Assembly: GCA_026936335.1 (NCBI GenBank) | Contig: JAPMXV010000022.1 | Location: 62,001-126,000, forward strand | Source of the DNA: Mantamonas sphyraenae STR306 | Taxonomy: Eukaryota > Protista > CRuMs | DNA length: 64,000 nucleotides | Reading direction: 5' to 3' | Shown here: one piece after another, positions 32,469 to 42,482 of the stretch | How positions within the stretch are numbered: position 1 is the stretch's first letter | Layout of the letters: every line of letters begins with the position of its first letter | The notes under the pieces: generated by a model | Databases searched by the model: none | Seen by the model: the letters and a program-made list of their open reading frames with translations, nothing else | Told to the model about the DNA's origin: nothing | Position numbers and translations under genes: made by a program

Positions 32469-32711
32469 CTTTGCGTTTGCCACACCGCCGCTAGACCACC
32501 ATTCGTCAATTCCTGTTTGCAAAACAGCGCGCCGTCGTACACAATCGTCACCCCACGCACATACGACACACACACATCAAATGAAGTCACGATCAGGTCA
32601 CAACGTTGTTAGTGACGGCTAGGGGGAGGGGGGAAAGGGGGGAAGTCCATGGACGGGGCACAAACTCACATTTAGAATGTGTTTGGAACGTGTGTTTCGA
32701 ACCAAAGCGCT

Positions 32712-32745
<34 letters not shown>

Positions 32746-32763
32746 ATAAAGACGTGGTTGTTC

Positions 32764-35700
32764 TCAGGCTTTGACCTTCTGAAGGTGCGGGGGACGATGA
32801 CCAAGGAGGATGTAGAACAAGCCCACAAGGCCCATGTTGAGAGCAGCGTTTGCATCACGGTCAACACAGCGTCGACGGTAGTCGATGGTTGGGTTGATAT
32901 TGCTTGCAAGTGACATGGCCGTGCCATTCACGGTGGTCTGGTGTGTTCGGAGAAACGAGTTCGAGGAGCAGGAACATCGCTTCTGCCGGCCCAATGGGGC
33001 ATGCGAGCCGAGATCTGGTGCATAGTCCATCTCTGCACCACAGTTGGCACACGTCTTGGAGGTGTAAAACTCGTTACAGCGCAGCACGATGTGCGAGCGG
33101 GCGATGTACTGGACAGTCTTCTTGAAACCGCCGCTCTCGCCACGCCACGATACGCTCCCGACAATGTAGATGACCATCCTTGGGTTCTGGTTGTCTCGAG
33201 GGCGGGATGCGTTCGCCATGAGCTGCTGAGTGTGTGCGTGTCGTCGTGTTCGATGCTTCTTGCCGACGCGGCCGTCCGGGTCTCTCCCTGCAGCTGTGTG
33301 CCTTGCTAGGCTGTGCGTGTGATCGTTGATCTTTCGCTCGTGGTGTGGCACAGTCGGTACTTTCCACCACCGCCCAAGGACAGCGTCTGCCCCTCCGCTC
33401 GACGACTCAATCTGTGCGCAGAGTGTGTTGGTTGCAAGTTTTCCCGGATCGATCAGGCAGAGTTGGATGCGTGTCTCCAGCAGTGCCTTGGTCTCCAGAG
33501 TTTCCTCGTCCGTGAGTGTGGGTCGTAGCCGCAGCGTGTGCAGATCAACGGCGACAGGGTCCCCTGCAGGCAAGGCAACTCCGGCTTCACCCATCCCCTG
33601 CAACACCTCCCGTCCGCCAAGGAGGGTGCCAACGCGCTCGTGGCCGAGCAGATGGCACAAGCGTAGCACTGTGATGAGTTGTGTCTGGTGTGTGGCCTCG
33701 TCTTTAAGCGCTTTCTGCAGCAACGGGATGGCGTACGAGGCACTGCGTCGCTCAGGCACCACGAGCTCCAACAGCGAGAAGAGTGGCTGATCCCGGCCCA
33801 TGTACTTGGACCAGAACGACCTGAGCATGGCCATTGATCCCTGGGTATGCCATCCTTGTGCTTTGGCGATTTCACCAGCAACCACCAACGTACCGGTCAT
33901 TGTAGCCAGCTTCCTCTGCGACAAGTTCGCTACACGTGGACACAGCAGAAACGACAACACCGGCGCGGCTGTTGCACGTGCTTCTTGTGCATCATGCGAC
34001 AGTGCGTCGCCCAGCAAGTTGTGCTTGGAGAACCGATCGATCTGCGTGACCACTTGCTGGGCAAGCCTGCTCGTGCCCTTCGATGTGAATGCCCACTTTG
34101 CGATGGCCTTGTTGGCATCAAGCACTCTGTCGCCGGCCTCTTGCACTTTCTGCGCGACGCCAGCGTACTCACTGCCCAGCAGTGCCGCCACCGGTTTGGA
34201 TCGCAGGATCTTCAACTGCGCGTGCGGGGCGATGTAGATATCTGGAGATAGCGAGCGCCCTTTCTTGGGAAGGCCAACGCTGTGTCCTTGTGCAGCAGCT
34301 TTTGAAAAAGCGCCCCAGGCTTGATGGCGGTTTGGGCGTCGTTTCCGGCCAAAGAAGGTGTCTGCATCGCTTAGGTGCGAGCGTTGCAGCTGCTCGCGCA
34401 ACAAGGCAACTGCATCATCAAATTCGCTGTCTTCTTTGCCGTCCCGATTGCCAAAATGGACGCCCAGCTTCAATAGTCTCTGTTCGACCGCAATCTCGCC
34501 TTCGCCGAGCAATGTCGCAATAGCTGACACAGCGAGATCCTGGGGAACTTTGTCGATTGTAGCCAGTGATTGGATGTCTTTGGCGAGTAGATAACGCGTC
34601 AGCATCCCTTCAAGCTCGCCCAAAACGCTCTTGGACGACTCATCCAGGATCTTGGTCACAACAGGCCACATCGCTGTGTCTCCACTTGACCACATGTGAT
34701 CGTTGCTGTGTGGATAGAGAGCCAGCAGAACGCTGTCGTTCTCATCCGGTTCGTCCACAGTATCAAACACGCCTGGTGTTGACCAGGACGTGTCCCATGT
34801 GCTCGTTGTGTCGACTCGCAGCACGAGGAAGCGATGGGTGGGTTCTGCTCCTCGCAACACCATGCAGATTTCTCTCATGAAAGACAGCATCAGCTTGTCG
34901 TTGTCGTAAAAGTACTGGTCAGGCAAGATCACTTCGTCAACGGACGTCGGGGATTGCACGCTGCTGGTTGCCTCGTCGCTGGTAGTGGTTGTGGTGGTGG
35001 TGGTTGTGGTGCTGTTGTTGCTGGTGCTGTTGTTGCTGTTGGTGCTGCTGCTGGTGCTGCTGCTGGTGCTGCTGCTGGTGCTGCTGCTGGTGCTGCTGCT
35101 GGTGCTGCTGCTGGTGCTGCTGCTGGTGCTGCTGCTGGTGCTGCTGCTGGTGCTGCTGCTGGTGCTGCTGCTGGTGCTGCTGCTGGTGCTGCTGGTGTTG
35201 CGAGCCGAACGTCGAGGCCCCTCCTGCGGGGCGTTGTACCCCAGCTCTCTCAAGCCACGCTGCACATACGCAATACCCGACGCAGCGTACACTGCGTGCT
35301 CCACCATGGCGGTCAGCTTTGCACCACGTGCAAGCACGCTCATCGCCCCGAAGTCATCGCCTTTGTGGCCAGAGAGCTCCACCGTCCGTCTGGAGTCAAA
35401 GGAGTGCATACCGAATGGGAAAATGTCCTCTTTGGGCCCTTGTGGTGTGGCTGACAGGCTCACGATTTCCTTGGCCACCTCCTCCTTCAGCTGCGCTGAT
35501 TTCGCCTTGCGGTAGTGACCGACCAAAGTGTCACCCAGTCGCTGTGTCAGATCACGGCCGAGTCGGTGAGCCTCGGCTTCCTGGTTCAACAGATCGTCTG
35601 CCTGCTCACGTGCGGTCTCCAAGCGTACGAGAGCCTCGCTCTCAGCGTGACTTCGTTGCCCCATGGACGAAACGTACGCCGTCGCGATGCGCGCAGCGCT

Positions 35701-38294
35701 GTGTGTCCAGAAGCGGGCGATTCCCACCAACACGTCCTTGTTGGTGTCCTCCCCGTGGACGTGCAGGCGCACGTCGTTGCGGCCTTGCTGGGTCACGCGA
35801 ACCATGGCGTACCCACACACCGTCTGGTAGAACTGCTCGTTCAGCGTCGCCTTCAGCCAGTCTAGTCCTTCCAATGGGAATGGCTCGTTGTACAGTAGCA
35901 CGTAGTCTGCCTTCTCGTATCCGGCTGAGAAGAACACCCGCTGTTCCCCCCCCTCTGCCTCATCTGCTTCCTCCCCGGGCTCGTGGGCCCCATCACTGCC
36001 CTCGTTCTCACCCACTGCTTCCACCCCGGGCTCGTGGGCCCCATCACTGCCCTCGTTCTCACCCACTGCTTCCTCCCCGGGCTCGTGGGCCCCATCACTG
36101 CCCTCGTTCTCACCCACTGCTTCCTCCCCGGGCTCGTGGGCCCCATCACTGCCCTCGTTCTCACCCACTGCTTCCTCCCCGGGCTCGTGGGCCCCATCAC
36201 TGCCCTCGTTCTCATCCACTGCTTCATCCCCGGGCTCGTGGGCCGCCTCACTGCCCTCGTTCTCACCCACTGCTTCATCCCCGGGCTCGTGGGCCGCCTC
36301 ACTGCCAGCGTCCTCCTCGCCTGCCACCTCGCTTTCCGCCCCGTCGTCCTGTAGCTCCACGGGCTGATCCACAGAACTTGGGTTCAAAAGAACACGTGCA
36401 AGCGGATTGCTGGGTGCGACTGTCCATGTGCGTACAGAAACGCGCTTCAGACGCGGCGCTTTTCCCTTCCGCAGGCCTGGTTGTAGCATCATGATGCTCT
36501 CCACCGGCATTTTCGCACCTGCACCATCGGCAAACTGCAAATTGGGGCCATCTTCAATGAAGGCCTTCGCATTTCCCTTCAGCGAGACCATCATGCGGGA
36601 CACGGAGGTTGCGGTGTTGAGCACTTGGATCAGCTGCTGCAATTCGGAAAGCGTGTACGCAGACCCAAAGTATGTCCTCGCTGCAATCATTTTGACCAGG
36701 GTGGCGCTCCGGTAGCCCAGTTTTGACACAGACTTCCACAGTTTGTCGTACTGAGTCTGATTCCATGCCTTCCTGTCGTCCACGTACTGATCGTCCAGAC
36801 CCAACTGGCCCTTGGCCGCCGCAAAGCATGACTGCCAGAGTACCATGTCGCCCGTTTCCTTTGCTAGTTCCACATGCTTGTCCAGCCAGGCGAAGGTGTG
36901 CGGCTTTTTCTGCTGCTTCAGCTTCATGAGCTCCTCCCAAAACGTTTCGGCATCGTTCAACAACCCAGCCTCCTGCGCCATACGAGCAATGGGGAGCGGA
37001 GCTCGCAGCCAGGTTGTGCAGATGTCGCCTCGGCCAGCTGCCAGTGCCACCTCGGCACCTTCTCGGCGACTTGCAGGCACAAGCGCGTGCCAGGTGTATG
37101 TCGTTGGGTGCACGATGTACAGAGTCTTGGGTGTGCGTGGGGCACAGAAGAAGAAATCTGAATCCACAGCGATGACCACAAAAATCTTGGTGCTCTCCTG
37201 GAACGCCGCGACGATGGTGTCGTCTGCGGGGAATCCGGGAAGGGACACAACACTGATAGTGTTTTCACTCTTGAAGCGGTCGTTCAGTGCTTCAGTAAGC
37301 TTCACATACGCCTCCTCCTTCGACAGTGGCTTCTGCGAGTGTGTGTGTGTGTGTGTGTGTCAAGTCAGCCATGCGCAATCCTCTAATCCCACCAACTCGC
37401 CTTCACTTACATCCAACTCTTTGGCCGTGTGACGGGCCATTTGTCGCACAGTGTACATCATGTGCGATGGCCTTTTGGGGTCCTTGACATCGAACAACGA
37501 CCGGTGGCGATCTACGTGCACAGTGAGAGTCGCCGTAACACCGGAGGACAAAACGCCCGTTTGCAAGGTGTTGACGGCATCTCCAACTGCTGTGCATGCA
37601 TTCTCAAGTGACCCACTGCTTGGTGGCTTGCCTGCGTAGCCATGGAGCCCAGTGGGATAGTCTGTGATGCGTGCGTGTCCTTTGTGTGAGCGCCCGCCCC
37701 ATCTCCTCTCCGTCGCGCGCAGCTCGGCAAATATGCCCTCTTCATCGTTGAAACTGCAGGGTTGGGTGCTCGTGCAGTTGCAACGTGTCCAAGTACACTT
37801 ATAGACGTTGAAGCCCACATTTACATGCAGACGTCAAACGGCTATTTTAAATTCGCGCGCGCGCTGGGCGTTGCCAGACCCAGTACGCACCCATAATCAA
37901 TAGTCCACTCACATTGAGGCCCGAGATCCAATGCCACGTGCATGCCGCTATTCGTGCTGCTGCTTTCCATGGCGGTGTTGGCATCTGCGTGCATCTTGAT
38001 TTGCTGCAGAGCATCAGCGACGCTAGATGCCGCTGAGGAGTGCGACTGGGCAATCACTTGGTCCCTGATGCCGGTTTTCTGTTGGCTGTACCTCTTGCGG
38101 GGATACACCTGTCCCCAGAGGCCCAGCTCAGCCTGCTCATGATTGACAACGGCAACATCGAGTGCGGCAAACTTGTGGCCGAGACGGGTCACCGGCTCGT
38201 CCTGAATCGTGACACTTGCCACATGTGGTAGTGACAACACACTGCGTTGTGCCGACTTGGCGACCTTCTCTTCACTCCTCGTGAGTGAAACCAT
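32764..38294 (-). CDS. Giant (~1770 aa) Fanzor/TnpB-like RNA-guided nuclease with an N-terminal FEN1/XPG-like 5' nuclease (PIN) domain; predicted exons 38294-37891, 37753-37411, 37332-32764
   Basis: C-terminus has RuvC-I LIDPG (D at ~33450), IYIVG, Fanzor-type RuvC-II NEFYTSKTCANC (E at ~33072), a second Cys pair, and RuvC-III VDRDANAALNM. N-terminus has VALDLG, VHVDR, PGFPADD, VIAVDSDFF and ALAAGRGD. Intron 37410-37333 (GTAAGT...GCTGAC...(CA)n...CAG) joins in frame. Intron 37890-37754 (GTGCGT...TGCAG) also joins in frame but is less certain. Confidence 0.85.
35021..35198 (-). repeat. 12-bp coding tandem repeat (CTGGTGCTGCTG on +) encoding (STSS)n inside the Fanzor-like ORF
   Basis: Directly visible; translates as TSSSTSSSTSSS... 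Confidence 0.95.
35964..36306 (-). repeat. 51-bp coding minisatellite, ~7 copies, encoding the acidic 17-aa unit GSDGAHEPGEEAVGENE
   Basis: CCCCGGGCTCGTGGG recurs every 51 bp (35973, 36024, 36075, 36126, 36177, 36228, 36279). Confidence 0.95.
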
Positions 38295-38319
38295 AACGAA
38301 GATCGATCTAGTTGCTTCC

Positions 38320-38770
38320 GACCGGGCTTCTTGTAGCCCAGTCAGCGAGAGACACCCGGGTAGACACGAGAGTCAACACACTCGTCAGTCACGGTGTGGG
38401 GTGTTCGCGCGATCACATCAATCCGTATCACTGGGAGAAACCATTCCTGGCAAAGTCTGCACAGCGCATCCGCACATTCTCCTTCTATCGAATTCTGCGC
38501 ACTCCGAGAGTGTGACTGGACAAGCGGCTTGTACACATTGTACACGTTGTGGACGACATTTGTCTGGATTGGGCTGCCACTGTGCGATGCAATGGATAAC
38601 GGTGTTTGGGAGAGCGCGAAGGGTGGCAGCGCAGGCAGCTATTGACGGGGGTGACGCGAGCAGTGGGAGCAGATGCAGGATTGATTCGTTTATCGCAAGA
38701 TATCATGGCCATCTTGGATCTCACTGGCAAATAGCTGCGCAGTCGACCGCCAAAGGAGTTCGTCGGACGC
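38320..38770. ncRNA. Candidate structured RNA upstream of the Fanzor-like gene
   Basis: Complementary segments: 38573-38580/38623-38630; 38635-38643/38730-38738 enclosing 38661-38668/38719-38726 and 38696-38701/38711-38716; small hairpins at 38324-38339 and 38366-38385. Confidence 0.3.
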
Positions 38771-38806
38771 ACGCTCAATTGAAAACCCCTGAACCTCCAA
38801 GCAAAA

Positions 38807-40054
38807 TCACACCTCGTCATGGTTACCGCTAAAGCTGTCTGTGTCCCTGTCCGTGAATGTGCTGTTGCTGTTGCAGTTGCTGCTGCTGCTGCTGCTGCTG
38901 CTGCTTCCTGCGCTGCACTCCACTTCCTCCAGCGCCTCGGCGTGAACTTGAACTTGGCCCTCCTTTTTGCCACCCTGCAACGCTTCCTGCACCCACGCAG
39001 TCTCCCGTAGGTCGTCGATGGTCGCTCGTTCATCCGGTTCGATGCGCAGACACATCTGCAGCACCTGCCTGCACTCTGCAGACAATTGTTGGTTCAGCTC
39101 CTTGTCAAAGACGTAGCTGCCTGTGCGCATCAATTCGAGAAACTCGGGGGTGCGACGCAACGTGGTGCGCACCTGAAATGGAAAGAAACCAGCAAGGGAA
39201 GCAAAGAGCAGCACTCCCAGAGCCCAGATGTCGGCTGCCCTAGAGTAGAATCGGTCGCCGCGCCACACCTCGGGCGCAGCATAGGGCTTGGAGCCGACAA
39301 ACACGGCTGTGCTCGAGTGCAACACATGTTCCTCCTCCACAGCCAGGCCAAAGTCGCAGATGATGGCACGCAGCTTGTCATGGCGGTCGTCCAAAAGGAC
39401 ATTCTCCAGCTTCAGATCGCGATGCACAAGACCCTGGCCGTGGATATACTCCAGGCCACAGAGAAGTTGGACAAACACGCTCTGCATGGTGGCTTCGTCC
39501 ATGCTGCCCTTGCTCATGGCCATTTCCAGCAGATCCCCCTGGTTGGCCAATTCGCTCACCACAAACGCGGTCTCATGTTCCTCTTCCACCACAATGCGAT
39601 GCACATGCAGCACGTTCTCGTGCCTCATCTTGCTCAGCAATTTCAGCTCCGCCTGCGCATGAGCGATGTTGTCCGCCCCGCGGATGATCTTCACCGCCAC
39701 CGAGTTTGTGATTTTCCCATCTTCCTTTTCCACGTGCCCCGCAGACACCTCCTTGGCCCCTGTGCCACAAGCGTCTGCACATCCCTTGTTCGATACACTT
39801 TGCACAAATGTGTTTTCGTCTCCGACGCTGTTGCTGTCGCTGCTCAGCTCACTGGCTCCTTGCCCACCCTTGGTGTTGCCGTTGCTGCTCGAGACCCATT
39901 TCCCGAGAACAACCTGTGCGAACGAGCCCTGTCCCAGCACGCGCTGTGCAAAAATGGTCCGTCCCGCACCAATATCCACATGAGTAGGCATGGGAAAGCG
40001 CAAGAACTGCTCGCTGGTTGCCTCCAGCAGCTCAACTTCCGCGTTGATTTTCAT
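38807..40054 (-). CDS. Ser/Thr protein kinase, CAMK-like group (intronless)
   Basis: LGQGSFAQV, VAVKII, HENV, HRDLKLENVLL, CDFGLA, GSKPYAAPE, ADIWALGV. Confidence 0.9.
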   Translation of the reverse strand: MKINAEVELLEATSEQFLRFPMPTHVDIGAGRTIFAQRVLGQGSFAQVVLGKWVSSSNGNTKGGQGASELSSDSNSVGDENTFVQSVSNKGCADACGTGAKEVSAGHVEKEDGKITNSVAVKIIRGADNIAHAQAELKLLSKMRHENVLHVHRIVVEEEHETAFVVSELANQGDLLEMAMSKGSMDEATMQSVFVQLLCGLEYIHGQGLVHRDLKLENVLLDDRHDKLRAIICDFGLAVEEEHVLHSSTAVFVGSKPYAAPEVWRGDRFYSRAADIWALGVLLFASLAGFFPFQVRTTLRRTPEFLELMRTGSYVFDKELNQQLSAECRQVLQMCLRIEPDERATIDDLRETAWVQEALQGGKKEGQVQVHAEALEEVECSAGSSSSSSSSSNCNSNSTFTDRDTDSFSGNHDEV

Positions 40055-40220
40055 GATCTTATTTGTCAAACGTCCCTTGCTCCCCGCGTTGATTGTGTGT
40101 CTCCTCTCTGGTGATAGACAAGTGCGCCTTGGTGATTGGTTGAAGATGATGTGTTTCTATCTGCTGATGCTGGTGCAGCGATGACGGTGTGGAGACCCTG
40201 CGCGCGCGTGTACGGGGGAG

Positions 40221-40524: not shown

Positions 40525-42482
40525 ATGGAAACCATTCAACATCAGTACGAAACCACGCTGACGATTCTGCAGGACTTGTGGGGTCAGATCGGCCTGAACG
40601 AGGACGAGCAACAGCAAGAGACGCACACACTGCACGCAAACGTGATGGAAGCGTTCCAGAAGCACATCGCAAGCACGCGGGAGCAAGTGGACGAGCTCAA
40701 CGCGGCTGTGCTGGACAACGACCAGCAGCTGCAAACCATTGCCAGCCGACTTGGCCAGAAGATCACGCCAGAGTCCCAGAATTTCGCCACGCTTCTGCAG
40801 CAGTGTGAAGCATCACAACAACAGCTGCAAGAGTGGGAAGGCGTAAGTGGAATCACAGCCCATGGCCGCCGCAGGCAAACGCTGCACAGAAAGCGCGGGC
40901 CGGCCGTTGCCTTTTCCAGATTTTAAACACCGATTGCACACACGCGCTGACACCGCCCCTCTACGTGACACAGAAACGCGACGAACGGATGGAGGAGCTT
41001 CAATTTGCCCTGGACGAGCTGTCGGCCGTGTGGGATGAGCTGGAGTGGCCTGCCGACAAGCGTGAGGGCCTCACGGAGCTGGGCGACGATCTGAGCGACA
41101 ACTTCCACACCCTGGTCCAGAAGGAAGTCAGCAAGGCGTACGAGGAACGTTCGACACGCCAACGCACAGTCAAGGCTCTGTACCTGCAGATCACGGCACT
41201 GTGGGCAGAATTGCAGCAGGAGCCAGAGAGCGCGTTTGAAAAGACCATTGCGCACGAACGCACCGAGATTGGCGTGACTGCAACCACGATGGCATCGTTG
41301 CAGGACACGCTGAGTGCCCTGTCCAAGGTGAAGCAAGAGCGTGAAGAGCAGGTGCGTGACTACGCCGTGGCCATCACCAAGCTGTGGGATCTGTTGCAGG
41401 TGGACGAAGACCACCGCGAACACTTTTTCTCGCACCACACGGGCCTGGGCAAGGCCGTGCTCGACGCCTGTCAGAAGGAACTGGACAGCATGACTGAACT
41501 CAAGGACCTCAAGATGCGCGAGCTGGTAGAACAGGCACGCGGCCAGCTGGTGGAGCTGTGGGACGCCATGCACCTGAGCCAGCCCGAACGCGACGCCTTT
41601 GCAGCCTTTTCCGTGACCGATGGCTACGACGAGGCGCTGCTGCAGACGCACCAGGCAGAGATTGAGGCCACACGGGAGAAGCTGATGGCCATGCAACCGC
41701 TGCTGAAGCTGATTCATCGCCGCGAGGACATCCGCTCGCAGGCCAAGGAGATGAAGCGAAAGGCGGCCGACCCGCAACGGCTGCTCAGCAAGAAGAGCGA
41801 CGCAGGACGGCTGCTGCGTGAAGAGAAGATCCGCGCCATGATTCGCAAGGACCTTCCGCGCATCGAGGCCAAGCTGGAGAAGGAGTGTGCCGCGTGGGCA
41901 GAGGAGTACGGAAGCCCCTTTGTGTACGCAGGCGTGCCCTTTATCGACTTTATGCAGGCTCAGAAGAAGGCCGAGGAGGAGGAGGCCGAGGCTGAGAAGC
42001 GTCGCAAGGAGGAGGAGAAAAAGGCTCGCCTGGCCGACGAGATGATGATGGGCACCACGGCGTCGTCGTCGTCGTCAGCAAGGACTCCGGGCAAGGCTCT
42101 CAAGACACCCGGCAGGCGCACGGTGGGACGCACGCCGCGAAGCAGCGTCAAGAAACCGCGAGCGGGCGCCGTGAGCTCCATCCGTTCGGCGCCGTCTGAC
42201 ACGCTGCGGTCGCCTCTGGTGGAGCGCAGTGGAGCAGGCGGAGCACGATCGCTCAACTCGGCCCACAAGCGAGCTCGCACGCCGCTGTCCAAGGCCACGT
42301 TTGTGTCCATGCAGCAGGACGAGGAGAACCAGGTGGAGAACACGCCGGGCAACAACGCAGGCCGCTCCACCCGCAGCAGCACCAAGGCTGCCCTCAAGAA
42401 GAGCAAGCTGTCCTTTGATGAGCAGCAGGTCACTGAGGACGTGTCATTTGTGGAGGAGGATCTGGAGCTGAGTTTCGCATGA
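40525..42482 (+). CDS. PRC1: PRC1/MAP65/Ase1 microtubule cross-linker
   Basis: LQDLWGQIG; ITKLWDLL; ADPQRLL...RLLREEK...LPRIE...W...FVYAG; basic TP-rich tail. Intron at about 40843-40973. Confidence 0.9.

Follow-up and report, generated by a model that had tools for sequence, protein, structure and literature searches.

A 64,000-nucleotide (nt) stretch of the genome of the protist Mantamonas sphyraenae STR306 (contig JAPMXV010000022.1, positions 62,001 to 126,000; hereafter the window) contains, at 32510..38793 of its minus strand, what is almost certainly a non-autonomous copy of an IS630/Tc1-mariner-type transposon whose cargo is a Fanzor1 gene of 1733 amino acids (aa). The predicted protein ends in the RuvC and zinc-finger signature of a Fanzor nuclease, and its N-terminal region very probably has a FEN-like fold. 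An earlier note, made from the window's letters alone, had called the gene a candidate two-nuclease system, a label which we use here in a predictive sense; it had missed that the gene is the cargo of a large, recently mobile family of IS630/Tc1-type transposons. We searched the whole genome (25,061,354 bases in 78 contigs, the window being G000:C22:62001-126000). Labels of the form Lnnn denote loci or paralogs of this genome and labels of the form Pnnnn denote proteins from a library-wide search. Each exon was searched separately, and residue numbers of the spliced protein are arithmetic from the exon coordinates. All features of the element lie on the minus strand.

The RuvC domain and its zinc finger occupy 32767..33561. 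The catalytic triad consists of D1506 in a DPG motif (33450-33448), E1632 (33072-33070) and D1704 in an RD motif (32856-32854), and the zinc finger has four cysteines, C1639, C1642, C1664 and C1666, the second pair forming a CxC. D1506 and E1632 are 126 aa apart, six residues separate the glutamate from the first CxxC, and 38 aa, an insert ahead of RD, lead from the last cysteine to the RD aspartate. Fanzors have been defined by DPG at RuvC-I and a catalytic glutamate six residues ahead of the first CxxC (PMC10711439, PMC13565253); the Fanzor motif D...[TS][TS]xx-C4 zinc finger-X(5,50)-RD is also present, with D/E/D intact. The last 265 aa matched PF07282 with E=1e-5; this copy falls just short of the curated cut-off, which paralogs exceed. 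A profile of 21 paralogs, across which the equivalents of E1632 and D1704 are invariant, had as its top solved structures the TnpB-like L79 (PDB 9b0l, E=1.2e-4) and SpuFz1 (8gkh, E=1.2e-3), and SpuFz1 gave the longest PDB profile alignment of the RuvC family profile. These results bear out the TnpB/Fanzor-type C-terminus that the earlier note had proposed. Linkage to IS630/Tc1, a non-IS607 transposon, together with similarity to the SpuFz1 structure, places the protein with Fanzor1. At the level of sequence, the gene is securely that of a Fanzor1-type RuvC/zinc-finger nuclease, and its cleavage activity is predicted.

The gene is split into three exons. The earlier note had joined open reading frames at 37842-38294, 37360-37818 and 32764-37305, all of which are present in the window along with every motif it quoted, through introns at 37890-37754 and 37410-37333 into a protein of about 1771 aa. 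That model does read in frame (5316 nt, 1771 aa) and its second intron recurs in three paralogs, but its first intron does not hold: comparison with paralogs moves it to 37912-37662, so that the three exons measure 382, 251 and 4569 nt and encode 1733 aa. Exon 1 (37913..38294; 127 codons plus 1 nt) ends just past the first acidic motif, VALD (D123, codon 37928-37926), and exon 2 (37411..37661) carries VHVD (D178, codon 37512-37510) and a predicted helical-arch region. Exon 3 (32764..37332), a single open frame of 1522 codons plus the stop, holds the second half of the FEN-like domain, repeats, a central region and the RuvC domain with its zinc finger. Intron 1 (37662..37912; 251 nt, phase 1, GT-AG) has its donor and acceptor kept in all three paralogs checked, L049, L050 and L051, as a phase-1 GT(A/G)AGT a few codons past the first acidic motif and a CAG followed by ACTA; the position and phase of intron 2 (37333..37410; 78 nt, phase 0, GT-AG) are common to the same three. 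With intron 1 so corrected, the first two aspartates stand 55 aa apart, compared to 53-57 in FEN1s and 93 in the earlier model. The 38 extra residues of that model showed no conservation in L049 or L050; in both of these, an in-frame stop stands just ahead of the matching stretch. Splice-site conservation among paralogs and the spacing of the acidic motifs speak against an intron at 37890-37754, which we reject. The corrected model is itself a prediction from paralog conservation. Every exon and domain compared was under purifying selection, with ratios of non-synonymous to synonymous substitution rates (dN/dS) of 0.11-0.27; relative to paralogs, exon 1 showed 64-67% aa identity (dN/dS 0.12-0.20) and exon 2 57-60% (dN/dS 0.21-0.26).

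The N-terminal part encodes a probable 5' nuclease domain of the FEN/XPG superfamily (PIN plus an H3TH-like part) at 37000..37950, spread over the three exons. The acidic set of FEN1/XPG nucleases comprises, in human FEN1 numbering, D34, D86, E158, E160, D179, D181 and D233. Six of these seven residues are present at matching spacing, as D123, D178, D248, D268, D270 and D314: the intervals are 55/70/20/2/44 here, 53-57/71-74/19/2/52-56 in FEN1s and 42/62/23/2/49 in T5 D15. All six are invariant in four paralogs at 40-60% identity. In the ESM Atlas, the start of exon 3 resembled 5'-3' exonuclease clusters at 0.93, the ten named top matches all belonging to one clan with few features shared, and the corresponding domain of L038 resembled Pox G5, virion host shutoff and XPG-type clusters. 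A combined half-domain profile scored 31 (E=4.6e-4) against T5-type FENs, compared to a maximum of 18 for shuffled sequences, and 26.7 with rows from this genome only. Copies with the domain number at least 13 in the clade of the window's element and 13-14 in the L038 clade.

Several observations count against a FEN-like N-terminus or against its activity. The glutamate equivalent to E158, two residues ahead of D248, is a proline here and a proline or serine in the window's clade. The combined half-domain profile scored 15.3 against the FEN1 profile while decoys scored 15.5, and leave-one-out profile tests reached significance for L046 only. The window's own domain had no Pfam, NCBIfam or PDB sequence match. 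AlphaFold models of two relatives, L038 and P0117, were of low confidence (pLDDT, the predicted local distance difference test, of 40 and 45); the L038 model had no clear fold match, and VIA-align matched neither model to a FEN. The profiles PF00752, PF00867 and PF02739 gave no significant match in the N-terminal domain. Among the further searches around this element, an ESM Atlas shape search, PDB sequence searches with single domains, word-index homolog searches and scans of metagenome and viral contigs came back blank. The low-confidence P0117 model does have a FEN-like order of strands and helices. The earlier note's FEN/XPG assignment is probably right in view of the motif spacing and of the Atlas and T5-type profile support, but neither a Pfam match nor a confident structure was obtained. 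Might the N-terminal region instead have some other fold, or a new one, to which its acidic motifs belong? The want of any significant direct database match, and profile probabilities that all lie below 60%, would fit such a reading; we regard it as very unlikely, in view of the order and spacing of the six motifs, the agreement among language-model matches and the T5-FEN profile alignments, which in six of the tested proteins landed on the ADD/DSD site, mostly without significance. A FEN-like fold is thus very likely, and we predict with more modest confidence that the domain is catalytically active. It is not needed as a housekeeping FEN, since the host has five separate canonical XPG_I genes, the only ones that a PF00867 search of the genome found.

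Both domains very probably belong to one gene, as the earlier note had supposed. Ten single-exon paralogs hold both motif sets, in the same order, in one open frame, which makes the fusion independent of the splice model; by profile, the link of these paralogs to the window's N-terminal domain is weak (E=0.005). Separate PIN and RuvC genes are unlikely, given that exon 3 holds the greater part of the PIN motifs as well as RuvC and that the single-exon paralogs exist. The same domain pair, which the earlier note had proposed to seek elsewhere, was found outside this genome by a library-wide search with the RuvC profile: two environmental proteins, each encoded by one exon, have a clearer XPG-like N-terminus and a Fanzor C-terminus. 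These are P0007 (1224 aa, Logan SRR7244345) and P0117 (1300 aa, JGI 3300072388). They matched FEN1 (HHalign E=1.2e-4) and Xni (E=0.0012), and align to the window's exon 3 at the ADD/DSD/GRGD motifs with E=1e-3; Foldseek with the low-confidence model of P0117 placed EXO1, FEN1 and GEN1 within the first 20 ranks (best E=7e-3). A quick RuvC tree put both in a different, well-supported clade among Fanzors of ordinary size. This tree, which has long branches and includes several rows without N-terminus information, allows separate origins of the fusion without demonstrating them. Long Fanzors of 943-1836 aa (P0151, P0153 and P0154) also occur in Mantamonas plastica transcriptome assemblies, which shows that the genus transcribes such genes. 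P0153 clusters with the window's radiation, and its N-terminal EAD/DTD/GKTD pattern is suggestive but not significant. All five of these proteins are unannotated.

The gene sits in a family of transposons. The C-terminal 265 aa gave 57 RuvC matches in the genome and a profile gave at least 72, of which 60 fall in open frames at least 1400 aa long. Nearly every match to DDE_3, the IS630/Tc1 transposase (18 of 19), lies 5.8-10.7 kb upstream of the 3' end of a giant gene and in the same orientation. In L005/L051, a close relative with 56% identity over the RuvC region, an intact IS630-family transposase (NF033545, E=3e-38) is followed by a giant gene with the same two introns, between TA-flanked ends of the form TTCC...GGAA. 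Five copies of another subfamily are 98% identical over 5.83 kb and have unrelated flanks, with ends of the form TA|CAG...CTG|TA; they must therefore have transposed recently. Across the family, TA follows about 27 of 33 right ends; at the left, it stands ahead of the ends seen in L031, L035, L037-L043 and L051. The terminal 23-mer of the window's element occurs at 6 genomic sites and at none in a control, and four of the five other sites are Fanzor copies of the window's clade.

The window's copy, a transposase-less member of the IS630/Tc1-type family, extends from a sharp right end at 32510 to an approximate left end at ~38793, the points at which similarity to paralogs stops. The left end lies 14 nt past the stop of a protein kinase gene (Pkinase; gene end at 38807), so that the element sits between the kinase gene and the next host gene. 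No transposase remnant was found in the window by tblastn. What speaks against a transposon copy is that the right end is followed by TT rather than TA and that the left end has no recognisable inverted repeat; these features mark the copy as an older or rearranged non-autonomous one. The same degraded ends and missing transposase, together with host-style introns, about 80% DNA identity to the nearest copies, strong purifying selection and the presence of so many intact copies in a compact genome, might instead suggest that this copy is no selfish element but has been domesticated, serving the host in RNA-guided defence or DNA repair. We consider domestication most improbable: sister copies with the same introns lie inside complete transposons, the flanks are unrelated at each copy, near-identical recent insertions exist, and selection is also expected from homing.

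Between the left end and the gene lies a non-coding leader (38295..38793), which contains the left end and the promoter region. Its identity to L048, L049 and L050 is 69-72% in aligned columns, compared to 62-64% for intron 1 and 51% for shuffles; its folding was unremarkable (z +0.7) and it had no Rfam match. The 3' tail (32510..32763) spans the 254 nt from the stop codon to the right end and finishes in a small terminal hairpin. In aligned columns it is 87% identical to L002/L003, whereas intron 1 reaches 62-64% and the leader 69-72%, and the similarity stops sharply at the right end. Fanzor omegaRNAs are located at the 3' end (PMC10432273), and the conserved tail is a likely candidate for the guide-RNA scaffold. 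The predicted guide segment would then be the right flank at 32495..32509, which differs at every copy; its length follows the 14-15 nt of described Fanzors (PMC13565253). The upstream gap of ~500 nt was also considered as a guide RNA and is less likely than the tail, with 70% conservation compared to 87% and Fanzor guides lying 3'. Compared to shuffles, folding of the tail showed no significant stability (z -0.5), and covariation was uninformative with three close sequences compared.

Part of the conservation of the tail may reflect gene conversion rather than RNA function, because the 3' part of these elements is homogenised. Over the last 120 codons, the window's copy and L002/L003 agree at fourfold-degenerate sites with an identity of 0.63-0.64, a value that falls to 0.26-0.38 more than 240 codons upstream. 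A steep rise in identity over the last 120-450 codons, fourfold sites included, was likewise seen for L032/L034, L031/L033 and L038/L031; for L032/L034, aa identity is 95-97% at the end and about 50% upstream. These copies are chimeric or 3'-homogenised. Locus L009:1-1491, which lies on G000:C68 downstream of the RuvC match at 191908, has at least nine tandem units of ~169 nt after a broken giant Fanzor. These units begin directly after the stop codon, at the position of the candidate omegaRNA, and may form an amplified scaffold array.

Not all giant genes of this genome share the N-terminus described here. Other giant subfamilies have different N-termini; the FEN-like domain is therefore not required for the spread of the family, and the variation suggests that the N-termini are exchangeable modules. 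One such subfamily (L034:2875-3800 and L032) has an N-terminus of Cys...His...Asp appearance that gave no match in a Pfam scan. Another (L044:2414-7846 and L045; 1810 aa) lacks clear FEN motifs, differs in its ends and has a long leader; the RuvC tree relates it to P0151/P0154 of M. plastica. It could then be asked whether the FEN-like domain has little or no catalytic activity, or serves a step of the transposase rather than the Fanzor cut, such as binding or cleaning excision ends, as one of several interchangeable N-terminal modules. The missing E158 equivalent in the window's clade, the variable N-termini and the chimeric nature of the copies, with much higher identity at the 3' end, all lend themselves to this explanation. 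It is nonetheless improbable: the six acidic residues do not vary among sequences that are 40-60% identical, and even copies without a transposase show a dN/dS of about 0.2-0.27.

How might an active FEN-like domain serve a transposon-borne Fanzor? In homing by OMEGA systems (short for obligate mobile element-guided activity), the empty site is cut under the direction of the guide and the element is restored by gene conversion (PMC13565253). On the model of known Fanzors, RNA made from the 3' tail would extend ~15 nt past the right end and would direct RuvC to the empty site left after excision, or to that on the homologous chromosome; the element would then be restored by repair that uses the occupied copy. 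We further propose that the tethered 5' nuclease would trim or resect the cut ends, or remove flaps, and that such processing would favour homology-directed copying over end joining. Taken as a whole, this scheme of homing by a transposon-borne Fanzor with a fused 5' nuclease processing the cut seems to us evenly poised between right and wrong. Its fuller form is more tentative, and we incline slightly to doubt it: a single-chain 'cut and resect' machine whose active FEN/EXO1-like domain steers repair to homing, which has arisen more than once in eukaryotes and which belongs to a radiation with exchangeable N-terminal effector modules.

An alternative is that the FEN/PIN-like domain acts on RNA, either maturing the omegaRNA from the element's own transcript or degrading host RNA. 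Some members of the superfamily do act on RNA, among them the XPG-family virion host shutoff proteins, which degrade host RNA. Such established RNA-acting members, the Atlas look-alikes of the L038 domain, which include virion host shutoff, asteroid/FAM120 and MKT1 clusters, and the location of the predicted guide within the 3' tail of the same transcription unit would all be in keeping with a role on RNA. We judge it unlikely, since Fanzors of ordinary size (600-800 aa) produce their guide with no such domain (PMC10711439) and the window's domain most resembles DNA 5'-3' exonucleases. A homing nuclease whose FEN-like domain would trim the cut DNA ends is the likeliest of these readings.

Fanzor1 genes in Tc1/mariner elements were already known from PGv-1, PUl-1 and PUl-4 (Bao and Jurka 2013, PMC3627910). 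The present family resembles these in its TA target duplications, in combining a DDE transposase with a Fanzor and in having Fanzor-only non-autonomous copies, as well as in the motif D-X(125,275)-[TS][TS]-XX-C4-X(5,50)-RD (PMC3627910). Unlike them, the protein is 1733 aa long with a fused N-terminal domain, and the terminal inverted repeats are only about 4 bp in the window's clade; PGv-1 does encode a GIY-YIG nuclease, but as a separate protein (PMC3627910). Described Fanzor1s reach about 800 aa (PMC10711439). Compared to SpuFz1, GtFz1 and PpFz1 (Saito 2023, PMC10432273; Xu 2024, PMC11423790), the present protein has CxC as its second cysteine pair and an insert of 38 aa ahead of RD; a word search of the papers on these three proteins (PMC10432273, PMC11423790) found no PIN, exonuclease or fusion domain. 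With FEN1, EXO1, XPG, GEN1, T5 D15 and Xni the N-terminal domain shares the order and spacing of the six acidic residues and an H3TH-like G..D motif, and differs from them in being too divergent for Pfam, in missing the E158 equivalent and in being a predicted 5' nuclease fused to an RNA-guided nuclease on a transposon. P0007 and P0117 have the same combination of an XPG-like N-terminus with a Fanzor C-terminus and differ in belonging to another RuvC clade. No report of a Fanzor fused to an XPG, FEN1, flap endonuclease or PIN domain was found in the literature searched, which was incomplete and did not cover Repbase. Residence of a Fanzor in a Tc1/mariner element is thus known; what appears to be new is the giant size and the predicted fused FEN-like domain.

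The remainder of exon 3 contains two in-frame repeats and a conserved central region. An acidic tandem repeat at 35913..36371 (7 x 51 nt, or 17 aa per unit; repeat family D4) is probably a flexible linker, and a Ser/Thr repeat at 34985..35200 (12-nt unit; repeat families D1-D3) probably a linker as well. The central region (33562..34941) is 55-59% identical in aa to L002/L003 (dN/dS 0.19-0.22) and gave no match in a Pfam scan; by position, it is the expected place of the Fanzor REC/WED domains. TG(T/S) is conserved in the window's clade, and NDG in other subfamilies, at a plausible place for the TDG motif of the WED domain.

Beyond the left end, the neighbours of the element are ordinary host genes, a protein kinase (38807-40069) and a gene of the MAP65/ASE1 family (40833-42482). 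Elsewhere in the genome, three loci had a ghost-like appearance: the window's right-end 23-mer occurs at G000:C46:127782-127804 with no RuvC match nearby, an internally deleted copy at L047:2100-2950 keeps parts of both ends, and L048 is a 618-nt 5' fragment 99% identical to the C54 copy. At L035:7660-9460, the L035 element starts exactly at the terminus of an oppositely oriented L034-type IS630 element, as though the end of one element had served as the insertion site of another. In the left flanks of L038-L042, CTA stands ahead of the left end in 4 of 5 recent insertions, a possible hint of a target-adjacent motif (TAM) or a target preference.

Homing has been shown mainly for bacterial TnpB and IscB. 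With its dozens of intact copies, a cognate transposase that appears intact and its recent insertions, this cultured protist offers a native host in which to test why eukaryotic transposons retain Fanzors. The described size range of Fanzors is roughly doubled and the family is extended to CRuMs. If the fused 5' nuclease is real, an OMEGA system would control how a break is repaired and not only where the cut is made, and would be a natural counterpart of engineered nuclease-exonuclease fusions.

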